Below, piece after piece: positions 2,916 to 28,511 of a stretch of DNA of 64,000 nt. The translations under genes were made by a program, and so were the position numbers. The stretch lies in the IMG/VR virus record IMGVR_UViG_3300041402_000314, positions 1 through 64,000 of that record, one strand, 5' to 3'. Below the pieces are notes generated by a model that was not told where the DNA came from, did not search any database, and was given only the letters and a program-made list of their open reading frames with translations. How positions within the stretch are numbered: position 1 is the stretch's first letter; each line of letters opens with the position of its first letter.

Positions 2916-2989
2916 TGGAGCTGGCGATGAGATTTGAACTCACATATCAAGGGTTGCAGCCAAGCACCTAGCCATTCGGACACACCAGC
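2916..2989 (-). tRNA. tRNA-Cys(GCA)
   Basis: Cloverleaf; loop CTGCAAC; U73; encoded CCA. Confidence 0.9.
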
Positions 2990-5677: not shown

Positions 5678-5822
5678 TGGTGTGAGTAGGGGGAATTAAA
5701 CCCATCATGCAACTACTAAGAGTGATCAAGCTCCTTTCGCCAACCTCCCTGCTTCGTCGCGAGAGCGCACATTGTATATGTCTCCCATTGTATCCACAGT
5801 GTACTACCTGTACTTTACCCAC
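5678..5822 (-). ncRNA. 145 nt tRNA-like RNA with ~70 nt insertion replacing the anticodon arm
   Basis: GTGGGTA/TACTCAC-A-CCA acceptor, GTAC-AGGTA-GTAC D-like arm, degenerate GGG-TTTAATT-CCC T-arm; no 7 nt anticodon loop found. Confidence 0.55.
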
Positions 5823-5928
5823 ACATTTATTTTAATGGGCGGTAAGTCTTGGCTCTTAACCGATGGCATATTCATACCTCCTCTTTAAAGTTGGTTGCAA
5901 ATGCACTTACCGCCCGATTTTATTTTTG

Positions 5929-6001
5929 TGCGTCTGGTGGGAGTCGAACCCACTACCGTTGGTTTTAGAAACCACGACTCTAGCCGTTGAGTTACAGACG
6001 C
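5929..6001 (-). tRNA. amber suppressor tRNA(CTA)
   Basis: Canonical spacing GCGTCTG-TA-ACTC-AACGGCTA-GAGT-C-GTGGT-TTCTAAA-ACCAA-CGGTA-GTGGG-TTCGACT-CCCAC-CAGACGC-A places CTA at positions 34-36; CCA not fully encoded. Confidence 0.85.
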
Positions 6002-6008
6002 GAACTAA

Positions 6009-6302
6009 TTAAATTAATCTCATACTCTTAAAATGATCATTGTTTCCAAGACTAGCTATAGCAGTCATTTGATCGCCTATATCAGGCTCTCTGAAACTTA
6101 TGTGACATATTCTATCACACTCCAACTTCTTTGTCAAGCTAATTAATTCGTTCTCGTCTCTAATACTTAAATAGACTAGGGTTCCGTTATCCCAATCAGT
6201 GTCGCGGTTGCGAAGGACATACTCAGCTAAAGCATGACCTCCCTGTACCGCCTGTTGGGATTTACTTAAGTCCTTACGCACCACAACATACAGCTTCTTC
6301 AT
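6009..6302 (-). CDS. peptidyl-tRNA hydrolase type 2-like protein
   Basis: KLYVVVRKDL..QQAVQGGHA and FREPDIGDQMTAIA match the phage Pth2-like family. Confidence 0.8.
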   Translation of the reverse strand: MKKLYVVVRKDLSKSQQAVQGGHALAEYVLRNRDTDWDNGTLVYLSIRDENELISLTKKLECDRICHISFREPDIGDQMTAIASLGNNDHFKSMRLI

Positions 6303-8801: not shown

Positions 8802-8875
8802 TGGTCGATCTTGCGGAGTTTAACCGCTCATCCAAACCCTCACGGTAAGGTATGCTGACGTTACATTAAAGACCG
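8802..8875 (-). ncRNA. degenerate tRNA-like gene
   Basis: CGGTCTT/AAGATCG-A-CCA acceptor with G3:U70, D-arm similar to the tRNA-Gln(TTG) here, TTAAACT T-loop; anticodon arm folds as CCTTA-CCG-TGAGG with no 7 nt loop. Confidence 0.6.
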
Positions 8876-13771: not shown

Positions 13772-14023
13772 TTAATTAGCTGGTTCAGGCTTTTCTTGCC
13801 AATGGGTTACATTCCAACCCCAATTATATTCTTTCCATGTTTCAAAGTCAAACCATATTTGTTTATTGGCATCAAACCACAACATCATTACTTCTGGGTC
13901 ATCGTTTGGGTCTCTATGACCATCATCGAGTTCGACAGTGACAATATACTCACCAATAACATTCCAATGTTTATTCTTTTCTAAAGGCAATCTATCTTTA
14001 ACTGATATCCAATTACTTTCCAT
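13772..14023 (-). CDS. DUF551-like protein
   Basis: WISVKDRLP...VTHWQEKPEP. Confidence 0.8.
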   Translation of the reverse strand: MESNWISVKDRLPLEKNKHWNVIGEYIVTVELDDGHRDPNDDPEVMMLWFDANKQIWFDFETWKEYNWGWNVTHWQEKPEPAN

Positions 14024-14041
14024 TTCAATCCTTTAGTTTTA

Positions 14042-14116
14042 TGGTCAAGGCGGGGAGATTCGAACTCCCACTTCATGTTCCCAAAACATGGGTGCTACCA
14101 TTAACACTACGCCAAG
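14042..14116 (-). tRNA. tRNA-Pro(TGG)
   Basis: CATGT-TTTGGGA-ACATG; C1:G72, A73; two U:U mismatches at acceptor pairs 2 and 3. Confidence 0.85.
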
Positions 14117-14401
14117 AAATTTAGAGCTACTTTATCACGACATGATTAGAACCACCTGATCTGTTTCGATCAATTTCACTCAAGGTATCGTACTTGCTTC
14201 TACTGGTTAGGTTTCCGCACTCTTATACCTAAATCTTTTTAATTTAACAACTGAGGATGGTTAGTCCTCCCGATATAGCCTTCATTGATCACCATTCAAT
14301 CCATCAGCCAAGTTTTCTCTCTTCTTATCCGCTAAGATAAAAATACTCTTCTTTATACAGTCCTTACCGTACCATCGGCTATTGTCAAAAATCTTTTAAG
14401 T

Positions 14402-14486
14402 TGGCTCCAGCGGTAGGATTCGAACCTACATAGTCCTTTCGGACAGTGATTAACAGTCACCTGCATTGCCAATCTGCCACGCTGGA
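14402..14486 (-). tRNA. tRNA-Asn(GTT) with long variable arm
   Basis: TCCAGCG/CGCTGGA-G-CCA, loop CTGTTAA, extra GTCC-GAAA-GGAC arm. Confidence 0.88.
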
Positions 14487-14497
14487 ACATATATTTT

Positions 14498-14585
14498 TGG
14501 TCTCGCGATCTGGATTCAAACCAGAATCTCCTGTCAGTGTTTTGTCATATTTTGGCTCATCAGCCTTTAATTAAACTACCACGAG
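14498..14585 (-). ncRNA. tRNA-like RNA lacking a canonical anticodon arm
   Basis: CTCGTGG/TCGCGAG-A-CCA, TCTGG-TTTGAAT-CCAGA T-arm; central GGCT-GATG-AGCC hairpin plus an A-rich stretch. Confidence 0.65.
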
Positions 14586-14601
14586 ACATATTTTATATTT
14601 T

Positions 14602-14684
14602 TGGTTGTCCGAGTAGGAATTGAACCTACTAATCAGAGGCGGTTATACCGTCATTCCTCGTTTACCCACCACATGGGACGGACA
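14602..14684 (-). ncRNA. tRNA-like RNA with remodelled D and anticodon arms
   Basis: TGTCCG/CGGACA-A-CCA, GTAGG-TTCAATT-CCTAC T-arm; central GAGG/CCTC stem with bulge and CGGT-ATA-ACCG triloop. Confidence 0.65.
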
Positions 14685-14861
14685 ACATATTTTATTTTAT
14701 TTGCCAGTGTACAACAATTATACTCGCTAACTGGCTACCGAGAGTTTAGAGTCACGACAAGCAAAATAAAATCATATGAGCCAGCTTGTCGCGAATCTTT
14801 GCATTGTTGTCAACGAACGATTAATCAATGACGGCTCATATGCAGAAAAACTTTATATTTT

Positions 14862-14932
14862 TGGTGGGTGTGGATGGATTTGATACCATCATTTCTCTGT
14901 ACATAGTGCCTTCAATCTTAGACGACACACCC
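14862..14932 (-). ncRNA. tRNA-like RNA with truncated anticodon arm
   Basis: GGGTGTG/CACACCC-A-CCA, GTCT/AGGC D-stem, ~12 nt anticodon region, 8 nt T-loop TATCAAAT. Confidence 0.65.
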
Positions 14933-14945
14933 ATAACTTTTTATT

Positions 14946-15281
14946 TTAAGATGTAATTAGTTCAACTATCTTCTTAAAATAATCTTTGGATATAGAATCA
15001 AATCCTATTTCATCCATCCTTTCCACCAAATCATATTTATTAGTTGTTACATACTGAGCTAAATTACAGTGGAAGTCATCACAACCTTCACCGAACAATA
15101 CAAATCCCATTTGCCCGAACTCACCATCATCTATTCGGCTCATTATCTCGTATTTTAAATCAAACTCTTCTGGAAAGTCGATATATCTCTTTGTCGCATA
15201 TTTTATCGACATATTTTTCAATACTTCGAATGTATATCTTTTAAAAACATAATTCCAAATTCTATCAAATCTAGCGATCAT
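14946..15281 (-). CDS. hypothetical protein
   Basis: 111 aa; GAGGA RBS. Confidence 0.6.
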   Translation of the reverse strand: MIARFDRIWNYVFKRYTFEVLKNMSIKYATKRYIDFPEEFDLKYEIMSRIDDGEFGQMGFVLFGEGCDDFHCNLAQYVTTNKYDLVERMDEIGFDSISKDYFKKIVELITS

Positions 15282-15302
15282 AAACTTTCCTCAATAATAT
15301 TT

Positions 15303-15377
15303 TGGCAGGTCGCCAAGGACTTGAACCCTGATTCTCGGCATTGGAAACCGATGCTCTACCAATTGAACTAACGACCC
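15303..15377 (-). tRNA. tRNA-Trp(CCA)
   Basis: TCGGT-TTCCAAT-GCCGA; G73; CCA. Confidence 0.9.
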
Positions 15378-15386
15378 ACATTTTAA

Positions 15387-15578
15387 TTACTCTTCTCTTA
15401 CTATCTTAAATCCTTTTACCTTTTGTATATCTGGAATGAGGCTTTTGGAATATATTAATCTCCATGTTCCATCACCAACCTTTTCTATATTGATCATCTC
15501 AATTTTAGTATCGATCTCTACTACCTTGGAAAGCTCCAATACTTTCCCTATTCCTTCTATCTCAATGCTTCGCTTCAT
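15387..15578 (-). CDS. hypothetical protein
   Basis: 63 aa ORF in operon. Confidence 0.55.
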   Translation of the reverse strand: MKRSIEIEGIGKVLELSKVVEIDTKIEMINIEKVGDGTWRLIYSKSLIPDIQKVKGFKIVREE

Positions 15579-17605: not shown

Positions 17606-17680
17606 TGGTGAGGCCACTCGGAACTGCCCCGAGATTGACTGGTTAAAAGCCAGATATTCTTCTAGTTGAATTATAGCCCC
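17606..17680 (-). tRNA. tRNA-Lys(TTT)
   Basis: Loop CTTTTAA; non-canonical T-loop GGCAGTT; CCA. Confidence 0.88.
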
Positions 17681-18349: not shown

Positions 18350-18427
18350 TGGTACACCTACGGGGTACTGACCCCCCCCGATCTCCAACGTGAAAGGCTG
18401 GCGAATTGTCCACTATTCGATAGGTGT
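18350..18427 (-). tRNA. tRNA-Glu(TTC) with disrupted T-loop
   Basis: CCAGC-CTTTCAC-GTTGG; T-arm reads CGGGG-GGGGTCAGTA-CCCCG (G8 run); 5' end overlapped by the endonuclease CDS. Confidence 0.7.
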
Positions 18428-20402: not shown

Positions 20403-20476
20403 TGGTACTCCCTGATGGTACTGCCCCACCGCTTATTGGATGTAAACCAATCGCACTACTATTATACTAAGGGAGC
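20403..20476 (-). tRNA. tRNA-Val(TAC)
   Basis: ATTGG-TTTACAT-CCAAT; T-loop GGCAGTA; CCA. Confidence 0.87.
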
Positions 20477-20482
20477 AAATAT

Positions 20483-21394
20483 TTAATCTGTCTTTAATCT
20501 AAATCTACCCATTTCAGGACAACCTTCTCTCTTGAAATGAGTTCCTTCATACCTATTTATAACACCTTTTACTACCTTACCATCGACACAATCTGAATTC
20601 TTAAGAGCCTCATATATCTTAACGGCTTCTGGAGAATACATTATGTCATTTTTGGCAAGTCCTAATTCCATTCTCTCCATTACCATGATAGCATCAAAGG
20701 TCTTATAATCACAGCCTAGTTGTGCCTCATCGGTATTATCATCGGTCACACCAAGTCCATCACTAGGAGCCTGAGTTATGATATCTTCTCTAACACCCAA
20801 TAACCTAGCTATCGTAGGTAGTTCAAATCCCTTGAATATATATTGTATCGGTGCGAGGTCTCCAACGTCTCCGTGTAGTGTCCAGAAACCAGCGAGATAT
20901 TCACTGTAATTATCTGTACTCAGAACCAGACCATCATTCAGTCTAGCCATATCATAGAGCGTCATCATTCTCAACCGAGCTTTTATATTTCCCTGTCTGA
21001 TAGCACCATGATTAATTTTACCTGCTATGATGTCGTTATGTCTTAACACATTAGGTATAAATGTTTCCATAGTTTCATCTAACCAATGGACGCTATCATA
21101 GACAGTACAATGATTTGCACCAACCCATCCAGCCTGTTCACTATGCTTATCCGTTGTCGAAAGAGGTATATGGAGTCCGATCAAAGGAACGCCTATATAT
21201 TTCTCCTGACAAAGTGCAGCTATAACCGCACTATCGAGGCCACCAGAAACACCAACAACCAAAGATTTGAGCTTATTCTTATATACATAATCAGATACAA
21301 ATCTTCGCATTCTTCCTATGATGTCTTCAGCTTGCTCATCACTTAAGGTATATTTTGGTTCAACTGCTTCGACTAATCTCTTCAACTCAGACAT
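20483..21394 (-). CDS. nadE: NH3-dependent NAD+ synthetase
   Basis: VGVSGGLDSA PP-loop, GNIKARLRMMTLY, STDNYSE, FWTLHGD, APSDGL, TDEAQLG. Confidence 0.92.
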   Translation of the reverse strand: MSELKRLVEAVEPKYTLSDEQAEDIIGRMRRFVSDYVYKNKLKSLVVGVSGGLDSAVIAALCQEKYIGVPLIGLHIPLSTTDKHSEQAGWVGANHCTVYDSVHWLDETMETFIPNVLRHNDIIAGKINHGAIRQGNIKARLRMMTLYDMARLNDGLVLSTDNYSEYLAGFWTLHGDVGDLAPIQYIFKGFELPTIARLLGVREDIITQAPSDGLGVTDDNTDEAQLGCDYKTFDAIMVMERMELGLAKNDIMYSPEAVKIYEALKNSDCVDGKVVKGVINRYEGTHFKREGCPEMGRFRLKTD

Positions 21395-23280: not shown

Positions 23281-23309
23281 ATTATACTACATCCTTATCT
23301 GTTTGTCAA
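23281..23309 (-). promoter_or_regulatory. sigma70-type promoter
   Basis: TTGACA-17-TATAAT. Confidence 0.8.
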
Positions 23310-24181
23310 GTCCTATATAGACAGTTTTTAATAATATATCCCAACACATCATTATCCACCAACCGTTTAGCCATCGGAATATTCTGTGTATCTATAGCAC
23401 TTCTAACCACTGTAGACGAACAATCTATTGGAGCATCGGCATCTACCAGCATATGAGGTTCTTTCAGGAACCACGAGCTACTTGTTATATTCAAATCTTC
23501 TTCAGCTCTCGGAACAACTACAAAGGGTATTCTTCTTTCCAGTTCATCCCAACCAACCCATTTATTGGTGGTCATAGCATTATCAGCTCCCATTATGAAA
23601 GAGAACTGGTAATTATCATACTCAGGGTCATCGAGGATGCGATTCACGCAGTTTAAAGTCTCTCCCTTGAGCATGTGCCTTATTTCATAATCAAAAGCCT
23701 TTATACGTCCATCTACGGCTACAGCCATCTCTACCATTTTCAATCTTTGTTCTGGAGAAGTCATTTCCTTTCCGAACAGATGTTGGTAGCAAGGCATCAA
23801 CCAGACTTCATCAAATTTACCTGTAGCATCCAGAACCAATTGAGCTGTTTCTATATGACCTTTAGTAACAGGGTCAAAAGCTCCACCCAATATGGCTACC
23901 TTAGTCTTACGGCCTAATGATTTATATTGCTGTTCTCTTCTCTTTATCTTCTCATGAGCCATAGCTATGACATTAGATGCGTCCTCGCCCATTTCAGAGA
24001 TACCAGCTAGAACAGAACAAAGCAGATCGCCATATTCTTCTTTGAGATGATTTATATCAAGAAATCTACCGACCTCTTCTGCTTCTCTCTGGATATCCTT
24101 AACTCTTTCCGTTAATGGAGTCCTACCGAACATCTTTTGGAAGAGTTCATAATTCCTGTCTTGAAGGTCTTTTATACTCAT
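23306..24181 (-). CDS. nadD: MazG-like domain fused to NadD/NMNAT nucleotidyltransferase
   Basis: N-terminal REAEEV...EEYGDLL (MazG-like); C-terminal AILGGAFDPVTKGH (HxGH), FIMGAD, CSSTVVR. Probable ATG at 24181; the ORF track extends to 24283. Confidence 0.85.
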   Translation of the reverse strand: MSIKDLQDRNYELFQKMFGRTPLTERVKDIQREAEEVGRFLDINHLKEEYGDLLCSVLAGISEMGEDASNVIAMAHEKIKRREQQYKSLGRKTKVAILGGAFDPVTKGHIETAQLVLDATGKFDEVWLMPCYQHLFGKEMTSPEQRLKMVEMAVAVDGRIKAFDYEIRHMLKGETLNCVNRILDDPEYDNYQFSFIMGADNAMTTNKWVGWDELERRIPFVVVPRAEEDLNITSSSWFLKEPHMLVDADAPIDCSSTVVRSAIDTQNIPMAKRLVDNDVLGYIIKNCLYRT

Positions 24182-24355
24182 AGTTAATCCACAAATATCT
24201 CTAAAGGTTTTATCAGATAAATCCCTAATCATAGGCATTAATATTTTAGGAATTTCTTCATCCACAGTTAATCCCACTACCAACTATCATCATTATTAAT
24301 CCAGCGATAATGATGATAGTACCAAATATCAATTCAAACAGTCTCCATTTGTCCA

Positions 24356-24726: not shown

Positions 24727-24805
24727 TGGAGCGGATGGGGCGAGTCGAACGCCTTATTTACAGTTTGGAAAACTGCTTACCAATACCCTTGGCTTAACCA
24801 CCCGC
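24727..24805 (-). tRNA. tRNA-Gly(TCC) with enlarged D region
   Basis: GCAGT-TTTCCAA-ACTGT; GCGGGTG/CATCCGC-T-CCA; D region refolded as GCCAA-GGGTA-TTGGT. Confidence 0.8.
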
Positions 24806-27452: not shown

Positions 27453-28511
27453 TTACATTTGTTCTTGTTGGAAGAAATAATCTCTTACTACCTTAGAGAC
27501 TTTGTTGTTTACTTCCTTGACATCCAGACCAGCATCGGTAATGATGTCGAGGTCTTCCTTTACGATATCACCAATAACCCATCTGATGAAATCTCCCATT
27601 CCTTTACGATCTATCTCTCCGCCATTCAGAGTATCGAATGTTTCCTGTATGCCTTGCTCCATACGGAAAGCAGGAGTAATCTTATTTACCACTTCATTAA
27701 CAAGATTCATTTTAGCTTCGTCTACTTTAGGCAGCTTCTTTACTTTACTGGTAGAATGCTTTTCTCCCTTGACCTTAAAGCGAAAGTCATTGCCGTTAAA
27801 AACGCCTTTCCAGACCACACCCTCACCAACACCTTCATTTCCTAATTGGAAGGCCACAGGGCATCTTTCCTCGACTTCCAAAGTGATTTCATTCAACTTA
27901 TTCTGAAAAGCCTCTGGTTTATTGAAATCTATTTTTATTTCGAAGGTAGGAAATTCATCTATAAAGTAAATGTTATGATCATTAATTTTACTACCTCTAT
28001 TATTCGGACATACTTTACTTAAGTCTAACCAGAATCCATCTTCTTCATCATCATGAGACGTTATCTTAACATCGAAGATAACGAACATCTTATCAAGCCC
28101 ATTGACCCCAACACCTTTCTGAATAGACCCACCGCTGACTTCCCCGAAAATAGAAATGATGTTATTAATAGTATCGATATTAAAATCCTTAATTATTTCA
28201 GCTACGATATTATTGAATGAAACTTTTCTCGCATGTACGAAACAAGAAAACCCACAATTATCTTTTTCTGGGGTGATGATATTTTTCCTAGATTGCGTCC
28301 AAATACCACTTTCAGCATTAAAGCATACTGCACCATTACTTCCATGAATTTTAGTGGTTCCTGTTAATTTCAGAACTGGTTTCGGTCTCATCCCATCATA
28401 TACGGGTTCACCATCTTCTCCTATTCCTACAAAACTAGCAGAATGGCTTATATGTTTAACAATATTTCTATACTGTTCTATACTTGGGTACTTAATAAAC
28501 TTCTTTTCCAT
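27453..28511 (-). CDS. ATP-dependent RNA ligase (Rnl2-like)
   Basis: KYPSI, TKIHGSN (motif I KxxG), IFGEV, VIFDV, GEGVVW, FKVKGEKH. Confidence 0.88.
   Translation of the reverse strand: MEKKFIKYPSIEQYRNIVKHISHSASFVGIGEDGEPVYDGMRPKPVLKLTGTTKIHGSNGAVCFNAESGIWTQSRKNIITPEKDNCGFSCFVHARKVSFNNIVAEIIKDFNIDTINNIISIFGEVSGGSIQKGVGVNGLDKMFVIFDVKITSHDDEEDGFWLDLSKVCPNNRGSKINDHNIYFIDEFPTFEIKIDFNKPEAFQNKLNEITLEVEERCPVAFQLGNEGVGEGVVWKGVFNGNDFRFKVKGEKHSTSKVKKLPKVDEAKMNLVNEVVNKITPAFRMEQGIQETFDTLNGGEIDRKGMGDFIRWVIGDIVKEDLDIITDAGLDVKEVNNKVSKVVRDYFFQQEQM

Follow-up and report, generated by a model that had tools for sequence, protein, structure and literature searches.

Anticodon-less, tRNA-shaped RNA genes in the tRNA island of an IMG/VR phage

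Two roles are commonly assigned to phage tRNA clusters: to supplement codon reading, and to replace tRNAs cleaved by host defence systems. The phage T4 cluster also encodes the species 1 and species 2 RNAs (rnaC and rnaD), which have been unexplained for about fifty years. In this study, we analyzed the first 64 kb (64,000 nucleotides, the whole stretch of DNA, hereafter the window) of a 204-kb IMG/VR virus record (IMGVR_UViG_3300041402_000314; completeness estimate, 89%). The interval between its tRNA-Trp and tRNA-Asn genes contains three genuine non-decoding, tRNA-shaped RNA genes, designated A, B, and C. An initial annotation had grouped these three with two other elements, D and E, as one family of CCA-ended tRNA mimics with a lost or rebuilt anticodon arm.

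The T4 RNAs and the C-type RNAs described here are small non-coding genes that lie in a T4-type tRNA cluster, on the strand of the tRNAs and directly after them. T4 rnaC ends in a perfect T arm (CCGGG-UUCGAAU-CCCGG) with a canonical loop, and no clean 7-bp acceptor is readable in it. The T4 RNAs are 139 nt (rnaC) and 119 nt (rnaD) long, whereas the C-type RNAs span 69-83 nt and combine a full tRNA core with a non-canonical 8-nt T loop. A covariance model of the C-type RNAs (R1, see below) gave no match over the T4 locus (L007), and shared sequence blocks were not seen by eye. Judged from these comparisons, rnaC and rnaD are the nearest precedent, without homology.

Three other groups of RNAs invite comparison. 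Staphylococcal non-proteinogenic tRNA-Gly species, the donors for cell-wall synthesis, have altered T-arm features and are kept out of translation; unlike the RNAs described here, they keep a normal anticodon arm and a defined glycine identity. Bacterial Y RNAs of the YrlA type mimic tRNA and are bound by Ro60 (PMC4201824). They are likewise non-decoding and have a tRNA-like domain with an acceptor-like stem and D and T arms; the elements of the window differ from them in their free CCA ends, tRNA-type flanks, and lack of a Ro-binding helix. Kinship with Y RNAs, one of the roles first proposed, was not borne out: no Y-RNA or YrlA family of Rfam matched the elements, and Ro60 (TROVE, PF05731) was not found in the 204-kb record by a search that gave matches in control genomes. 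Finally, T5 tRNA-Lys counters PARIS (PMC11464382), a phage tRNA-Tyr counters a retron effector (PMC11555353), and anticodon-loop variants of phage tRNAs counter tRNA-targeting defence (PMC10264068). These are also RNAs of tRNA clusters that are thought to matter in conflict over host tRNAs. However, they are complete and decoding, and they replace or resist the cleaved host tRNAs; an RNA without an anticodon loop cannot replace any. A limited full-text literature search returned phage counter-defence tRNAs and tRNA mimics of RNA viruses and bacteria, and no anticodon-less tRNA bodies in phage tRNA islands.

Structure of the tRNA-shaped elements

The elements, together with the adjoining tRNA-Asn gene, are as follows.

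E: 5678-5822, minus strand, 145 nt, between suppressor tRNA(CUA) and tRNA-Arg(UCU); the weakest element
D: 8802-8875, minus strand, a weak tRNA-like element of 74 nt
tRNA-Asn(GUU): 14402-14486, minus strand, 85 nt, called by ARAGORN, Rfam 56 bits; preceded by A
A: 14498-14585, minus strand, a tRNA-like RNA of 88 nt, 11 nt upstream of tRNA-Asn
B: 14602-14684, minus strand, a tRNA-like RNA of 83 nt
'mid': 14685-14861, minus strand, a structured non-coding stretch of 177 nt between C and B
C (c1): 14862-14932, minus strand, 71 nt, anticodon-less family member

Three related uncultured phages, found through the NAD synthase of the island, were used for comparison: L003 (70% protein identity), L004/L023 (62%), and L005/L024 (59%).

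The acceptor stem of 6-7 bp, the discriminator A, the CCA end, and the T arm initially described for A, B, and C were confirmed by folding, and all three T stems have 5 bp; B has 6 acceptor pairs and a mismatch. None of the three has an anticodon stem of 5 bp with a 7-nt loop (U33, purine at 37), and a 7-nt anticodon loop is absent altogether. Their flanks match those of real tRNAs, as had also been noted, with ...AUAU(G)U and a U at -1 on the 5' side and AAAAUA after the CCA.

In A, the acceptor (CUCGUGG/UCGCGAG) has 7 bp, including two G-U pairs; A73 and CCA follow, and the T arm reads UCUGG-UUUGAAU-CCAGA, with the loop UUGGAAU in L003. The GGCU-GAUG-AGCC hairpin that had been taken to replace the anticodon arm is real, but its place is an expanded D loop. 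Because it sits between the pairing D-stem strands GUUU and AAAC, it is better read as a D-loop insertion; the D arm of A minus this insertion, GGUAGUUUAAGGCUGGUAAAAC, is found in a tRNA of L004. The anticodon arm itself is wholly missing, and a 12-nt linker leads from the D stem to U48. The sequence CUGAUGA in A resembles a hammerhead motif; this candidate was rejected, as L003 has CUGGUGA and no Rfam ribozyme matched.

B has a 6-bp acceptor with a U.U mismatch, A73, CCA, a D arm CCCAU-GUG-GUGGG (5 bp, 3-nt loop), and a T arm GUAGG-UUCAAUU-CCUAC with a canonical loop. The bulged triloop stem reported at the anticodon position was confirmed: GAGG/CCUC, a 5-nt bulge, and CGGU-AUA-ACCG form a well-formed 8-bp helix closed by the triloop AUA. 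A relic of tRNA-Sec was considered for B and rejected (15 bits against an Rfam cutoff of 47).

C begins 13 nt past an open reading frame (ORF). It has a perfect 7-bp acceptor (GGGUGUG/CACACCC), U8, A73, CCA, and a D stem GUCU/AGGC with the D loop AAGAUUGA. A 17-nt linker, which can form at most a mini-hairpin of 2 bp and 6 nt, stands at the anticodon position. The T stem GAUGG/CCAUC encloses an 8-nt T loop, UAUCAAAU. A coding role of C (ATG GGT GTG...) was rejected, since an indel relative to the L004 homologue shifts the frame while the nucleotides stay conserved.

D and E had been described as the same type, and their acceptors and CCA ends were confirmed. D has a 7-bp acceptor with G3.U70, found in D alone among the five elements, and A73 and CCA; its T stem has just 4 bp (loop UUAAACU), and its fold is no better than that of shuffled sequences (z -1.1). 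E has a 7-bp acceptor, A73, and CCA, a T stem of just 3 bp, and a fold at shuffle level (z -0.02). The fold of 'mid' has a z of -2.9, and neither an Rfam match nor a conserved ORF was found in it.

ARAGORN called none of A-E. Neither the Rfam tRNA family (RF00005; cutoff, 29 bits) nor any other family matched them at E≤10, even with inputs of about 100-460 bases. No tmRNA match fell on A-E; the one tmRNA match reported falls on tRNA-Ala and is below the cutoff, and ARAGORN reported no tmRNA. Chance does not account for the recurrence of acceptor, T arm, and CCA: a scan for this combination gave 29 matches on the minus strand of 1-30000, whereas first-order Markov shuffles averaged 0.64 and never exceeded 5. 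A strict version of the scan returned A and one more uncalled element (2916-2989) within the tRNA region and just three loop-unlike matches in about 400 kb outside it, both strands included.

Relatives and the family of C-like RNAs

There are no close DNA relatives of the window in the phage or IMG/VR collections. When the 581-nt region was compared by BLASTn with 50,697 phage records, matches were confined to the tRNA-Asn part, and exact 25-27-mers of A and B were not found in IMG/VR. IMG/VR was also scanned for NadE: a single protein as query found no match, and an alignment-based scan gave six distant loci, none with a tRNA island, and the island is also absent from the more distant NadE-bearing contigs L020-L022. 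The order of genes in the Trp-Asn interval differs among the related phages.

Window: Trp, ORF, C, 'mid', B, A, Asn
L003: Trp, odd tRNA-like element (X), 'mid', A, Asn
L004: Trp, X, C, Asn, second C-like RNA
L005: Trp, Asn, Pro, C-like RNA

The initial annotation had proposed to look for normal tRNAs at these places in relatives. None was found at the places of A and C; L003 and metagenome contigs carry A there, and L004 carries C. The A homologue (L003:8127-8214) has 90% identity and the same architecture, compared with a median of 69% for same-anticodon tRNAs of the two phages. The C homologue (L004:18219-18287) has 85% identity and likewise no anticodon arm; here the same-anticodon median is 64%, and the identity of C exceeds that of every such tRNA pair (maximum, 82%). 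'mid' has 85-86% identity to L003:7953-8126 and is also present in relatives from runs X4 and X5. Contigs from four other sediment and cold-seep runs could be aligned to the region, and near-identical copies of A, with two to five changes, occur in two metagenomes. The changes in these contigs lie in loops or keep the pairing (A-U to G.U in the C T stem; G.U to A-U in the A acceptor).

B behaves differently. L003 lacks it, and the junction there, at the repeated spacer, is clean. In one metagenome contig, 14585 is followed directly by 14685, so that 99 nt, B and one spacer, are lost, with 11 letters common to both sides; a B-like 3' half adjoins 'mid' in another virus from another run. From these junctions, B is read as a separate, recently mobile present/absent cassette of the same general kind as C and A. 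The position of E in L023 is occupied by an unrelated tRNA-like fold of about 112 nt without CCA.

Element X (L004:18105-18181 and L003:7878-7952) keeps the same 8-nt anticodon loop, UUGCGCGA, in both relatives. Its anticodon stem differs with compensation (UUCUG/UGGAA and GGGGA/UUCCC), and in L003 its 3' half is like the tRNA-Trp of the window and its acceptor is unpaired. The loop motif UUGCGCGA was not found in the window.

To collect further homologues of C, a pattern was derived from the blocks common to C and its L004 homologue. The pattern led to a copy in L006, and covariance models R1 and R2 and two degenerate scans of IMG/VR followed. The L006 copy (L006:3291-3361) lies in an unrelated, GC-richer phage of 133 kb. 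Its acceptor is wholly different yet fully paired (GCGGCGG/CUGCCGC), while the D-loop and T-arm blocks are unchanged; a CCCU-CGAA-AGGG hairpin stands at the anticodon position, and the RNA starts 5 nt after a PTH2 ORF. At this three-sequence stage, five pairs were already changed on both sides.

The C family has 14 members on at least 10 phage contigs: C of the window, two more copies in the same genome, two in L004, and one each in L005, L006, L041, L042, L060, L117, L118, L119, and L131. Two of the contigs measure 309 kb and 473 kb. The same-genome copies (198579-198653 and 198808-198879, minus strand; L028:1272-1346 and L028:1501-1572) are 155 nt apart and lie far from called tRNAs, between an ORF for a 310-aa zinc-finger protein and a 669-aa ORF without a Pfam match. 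Membership was defined by an R2 score above 50 bits, the T loop UAUCRARU, U8, A14, A15, and A47-U48. C passes with 70 bits (96 bits with R1). Four members outside the R2 training set scored 52-58 bits, compared with at most 40 for ordinary tRNAs. L123 matched the pattern, failed R2, and was left out of the count.

Pairing holds in 96% of the stem cells of the 14-sequence alignment, and both sides have changed in 13 of the 16 pairs, across all three helices. These values were reached by none of 500 shuffles, and slid partners gave 34-56% pairing. The check that had been suggested, covariation in the stems against divergence in the anticodon region, is therefore borne out in the C family. The acceptor has 7 bp of free sequence and is followed by A or G as the discriminator, and the members are 69-83 nt long. 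The hairpin at the anticodon position has a stem of 2-7 bp, a loop of 4-8 nt, and no conserved sequence; on this evidence it is taken as a spacer and not as a decoder. In contrast, U8, A14, A15, A47-U48 (AU directly before the T stem), and GGUAUC.A.UCC are invariant. The T-arm consensus GGUAUCRARUCC contains the 8-nt T loop UAUCRARU, and the short D loop AAGWU has no GG.

U8-A14 and the 15-48 pair are contacts that stabilise the core of a tRNA. Since these contacts are kept next to a GG-less D loop and a T loop longer by one base, the RNAs should retain an L-shaped body with a private elbow. The initial annotation had the elbow persisting in all elements. B has a canonical T loop (UUCAAUU). 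In the C family, the elbow is not simply retained; the canonical one (G18G19 with a 7-nt T-Psi-C-R-A loop) is replaced by a different, strictly conserved pair of D and T loops.

The C family is absent from Rfam. It is apparently restricted to phages, as far as the pattern scan reaches: the C-family pattern gave 30 matches over 596 Gb of bacterial and archaeal genomes, about the chance expectation, and none of them folds. The metagenome pattern scan for C returned the L006 contig again and four chance matches. BLASTn of the members against cultured phages gave tRNA-Tyr similarity in T arm and acceptor or noise, and no cultured carrier.

The grouping of all five elements into one family did not hold. 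C and the two copies outside the window, possibly with A, form one; B is the cassette described above, and D and E are without detected homologues. Among the other elements, D reached 10.6 bits with R2 (E value, 0.85), and B and E gave no R2 match. A has U8, A14, A15, and AU before the T stem, as the C family does, and on weak evidence from sequence is probably a diverged C-family paralogue.

Family members and A repeatedly adjoin tRNA-Asn(GUU); in L004, L041, L118, and the window, 3-13 nt separate the two, and L042 is also among the cases. By inspection, this adjacency is commoner than about 30 tRNA species per island would predict; a shared cassette or a link in function may lie behind it.

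Genome setting and other features of the tRNA island

The genome has a GC content of about 35%. Its family-B DNA polymerase has at most 36% identity to gp43 of T4-like cyanophages and, together with UvsW-, Rad50-, and RNR-type genes, indicates a distant T4-type myovirus. The sequence runs containing the phage are marine sediment and cold-seep metagenomes. The tRNA island occupies 2.9-26.7 kb on the minus strand and holds about 35 tRNA genes, of which 28 were called by ARAGORN and three more by Rfam alone; further odd tRNAs came from a custom scan. Almost every island tRNA has an encoded CCA. The 5' flanks are mostly ...AAUAU(G)U (24 of 31 have U at -1), and the 3' spacers are mostly AAAAUA-like. 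The island is a mosaic: same-anticodon tRNA identity between relatives ranges from 49 to 99%, with medians of 62-69% for the window against L003, L004, and L005. Homing-type nuclease genes (DUF559, HNH) are scattered through it, and cassettes are gained and lost at repeated AAAAUAU spacers. A promoter and terminator scan of 13900-15500 gave no excess over shuffles.

The genes for tRNA upkeep and the NAD-related genes of the island are listed below.

PTH2: 6009-6302, minus strand, tRNA upkeep
NAD synthase: 20483-21394, within the tRNA island
NMN-adenylyltransferase-like/MazG gene: 23306-24283, within the tRNA island
Rnl-type RNA ligase: 27453-28511, tRNA upkeep
CCA-adding-type nucleotidyltransferase: at about 69.4 kb of the record, just beyond the window, an ORF of 443 aa
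RlaP: about 2.5 kb upstream of the two C-family copies outside the window, tRNA upkeep

Two tRNAs came from the custom scan and are missed by both ARAGORN and Rfam.

Likely tRNA-Cys(GCA): 2916-2989, minus strand, two U.U pairs in the anticodon stem
Likely tRNA-Gly(UCC): 24727-24805, minus strand, odd D arm

Both were considered as mimics and rejected, as they read as real tRNAs; they fill gaps in the tRNA set of the phage. Three minus-strand tRNAs (17606-17680, 18350-18427, and 20403-20476) have proper anticodon loops and the odd T loops GGCAGUU, GGUCAGU, and GGCAGUA, respectively. All three are missed by ARAGORN, two score about 44 bits in Rfam, and 18350-18427 resembles tRNA-Glu(UUC). They are a second type of elbow variant within the same island. 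The tRNA-Asn(GUU) next to A has a long variable arm, GUCCGAAAGGAC, a class II trait unusual for Asn, and its L005 copy measures 92 nt. In L023, a tRNA-Arg(ACG) (L023:10322-10400) keeps the acceptor, anticodon loop, and T arm, with a D arm of about 6 nt and a variable region of 21 nt.

An amber-suppressor-type tRNA (anticodon CUA; 'Pyl' in ARAGORN) lies at 5928-6001 on the minus strand, directly after PTH2. The window copy has no encoded CCA, and the pair of PTH2 and suppressor tRNA is syntenic in L023:11902-12274 and L024:10541-10911. In L006, the C-family RNA fills the slot straight after PTH2. A very stable long-range hairpin at 5823-5927 (minus strand) has an 11-bp stem (GGGCGGUAAGU/ACUUACCGCCC) and a fold z of -5.0, and encloses a strong Shine-Dalgarno sequence and the ATG of an ORF of about 23 codons.

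Explanations and biological meaning

The explanation that we favour, and regard as moderately probable, is that the Trp-Asn interval holds three non-decoding tRNA-shaped RNA genes, of which C, and distantly A, belong to a phage-restricted family that acts in trans through its acceptor/CCA end and elbow. Starting from the observed structure, conservation, covariation, phage restriction, and cassette behaviour, we infer how these RNAs would be expressed, processed, and brought to a partner. A, B, and C would be transcribed together with the neighbouring tRNAs. RNase P would cleave them at the usual U(-1), and trimming would stop at the encoded CCA; members without an encoded CCA, such as those of L005 and L006, would be completed by a CCA-adding enzyme of phage or host. 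The shared flanks, the U at -1, and the CCA argue for this maturation by the tRNA machinery. The mature RNAs would be stable species of about 70-90 nt that act in trans, using the acceptor/CCA end and the special elbow and not decoding. The target that we prefer is a factor that handles or attacks tRNAs and recognises the body of the tRNA; the RNAs would titrate this factor or shield the phage tRNA supply from it. A role in conflict over tRNAs is preferred because of the tRNA upkeep genes (PTH2, the Rnl-type ligase, RlaP, and the CCA-adding-type enzyme).

The identity of the factor can be narrowed in part. A decoy for anticodon nucleases, one of the candidate roles first proposed, is unlikely, as these RNAs have no anticodon-loop-like feature left to bind. 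The conserved non-canonical elbow favours a dedicated partner or the deliberate avoidance of EF-Tu and the ribosome. A sink for toxins that act on acceptor ends, also among the first proposals, is possible; candidates are toxSAS enzymes, which pyrophosphorylate the CCA end (PMC11559606), and MenT enzymes, which extend acceptor ends (PMC10435456). More tentatively, and with considerable doubt, the C-like RNAs may be phage effector RNAs of a class not recognised before, in which a tRNA body without an anticodon, but with its private elbow, passes through tRNA maturation. Such RNAs would either capture or inhibit defence enzymes that attack the acceptor/CCA end of any tRNA (toxSAS/CapRel-type pyrophosphokinases, MenT-type nucleotidyltransferases) or be charged independently of an anticodon and serve as a private aminoacyl donor. 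In that case, the repeated placement next to tRNA-Asn would be the sign of a functional cassette, a similarly speculative suggestion.

Several results weigh against the favoured explanation. The membership of A is doubtful: it scores 28.6 bits with R2, like ordinary tRNAs, has a 7-nt T loop, and fails the membership test, and its linker, ACUGACAGGAGAU, resembles that of C, ACUAUGUACAGAGAAAU, by eye only, a weak tie. Its conservation comes from one full homologue and the near-identical metagenome copies, and of its nine substitutions two fall in stems where about four are expected, an avoidance that is not significant. Two of the recruiting patterns fixed the T-loop sequence, so that the T-loop invariance is partly by construction, and some of the covariation among paralogues stems from their different tRNA-like ancestries. 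A homologue of B with the same middle part was not found. No homologues of D and E were found in the syntenic stretches of L023 and L024/L005, and the two may be decaying relics. The private elbow argues against simple mimicry of, or decoying for, host tRNAs. Lastly, a conserved protein neighbour was sought across the family members and not found, so that no partner is indicated; PTH2 is directly upstream in L006 alone, and the other neighbours are small unrelated ORFs or HNH genes.

Among the rival explanations, the one that survives best, though unlikely, treats the elements as processing punctuation. They would be minimal substrates for RNase P and 3'-end maturation that cut the polycistronic transcript and protect the ends of their neighbours, with no function in trans. 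RNase P requires an acceptor and a T arm, and these RNAs retain both; the spacers and the U at -1 are those of tRNAs, C and its L006 homologue follow ORFs at 13 and 5 nt, and the acceptor sequences vary freely. However, punctuation fails to explain a strict non-canonical D-loop/T-loop pair with U8-A14 and A15-U48 across unrelated phages. Nor does it account for a run of three elements beside real tRNAs that would be equally suitable, or for the family copies c4 and c5, which lie far from any tRNA.

A second rival, which we consider improbable, is that the RNAs are aminoacyl carriers. They would be charged by an anticodon-independent synthetase and either pass the amino acid on in a reaction off the ribosome or have a regulatory role through their charging state, with the elbow avoiding EF-Tu and the ribosome. 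The CCA end, discriminator, and tRNA core are retained. A15-U48 with A73, present in nine of the 14 members, could be an E. coli LeuRS signal; that enzyme reportedly reads A15-U48 and A73 and does not need the anticodon arm, which we take as a lead only. G3.U70, the mark of AlaRS, occurs with A73 in D and in the L005 member. A phage precedent for the use of charged tRNA is Mom, which uses Gly-tRNA-Gly in non-ribosomal chemistry (PMC13219725) and is encoded in the relative L003. Against this, a Mom homologue was not found in the genome of the window, the acceptor stems and discriminators vary between members and give no single identity set, and no transferase is linked to the family among its neighbours.

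Least probable are decaying tRNA pseudogenes, dead duplicates in a fast-turnover island whose acceptor and T arms erode last: the mosaic island with its rapid cassette turnover, its median same-anticodon identities of 62-69%, and the presence or absence of B would suit this view, as would the weak T arms, shuffle-level folds, and missing homologues of D and E, but decay leaves unexplained 14 C-family members in unrelated phages with derived features in common and compensatory changes in three helices, the conservation of C and A above the same-anticodon medians (85% vs 64% and 90% vs 69%), the same anticodon-less design in place of intact tRNAs in relatives, and, in B, a well-formed 8-bp helix where scattered mismatches would be expected. 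The acceptor and T stem of C equal those of phage tRNA-Tyr genes, which also fits a pseudogene and makes descent of C from a tRNA likely. The argument of the initial annotation for selection over random decay, accordingly, stands for C and A, with their conserved design and, in the C family, covarying stems.

The locus shows a third class of content in phage tRNA clusters, namely conserved tRNA-shaped RNAs that are unable to decode. Sequence comparison supports the view that such anticodon-less RNAs are maintained by selection in unrelated large phages. As tRNA finders miss these RNAs and several real odd tRNAs, the number of tRNAs counted in such phages is unreliable. The C family, compact and with clear invariant positions, is a cleaner object than T4 species 1 and 2 for asking about function. 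Should the C-like RNAs turn out to inhibit defence toxins that modify tRNA ends, or to be private aminoacyl carriers, phage counter-defence would gain a mechanism based on RNA.

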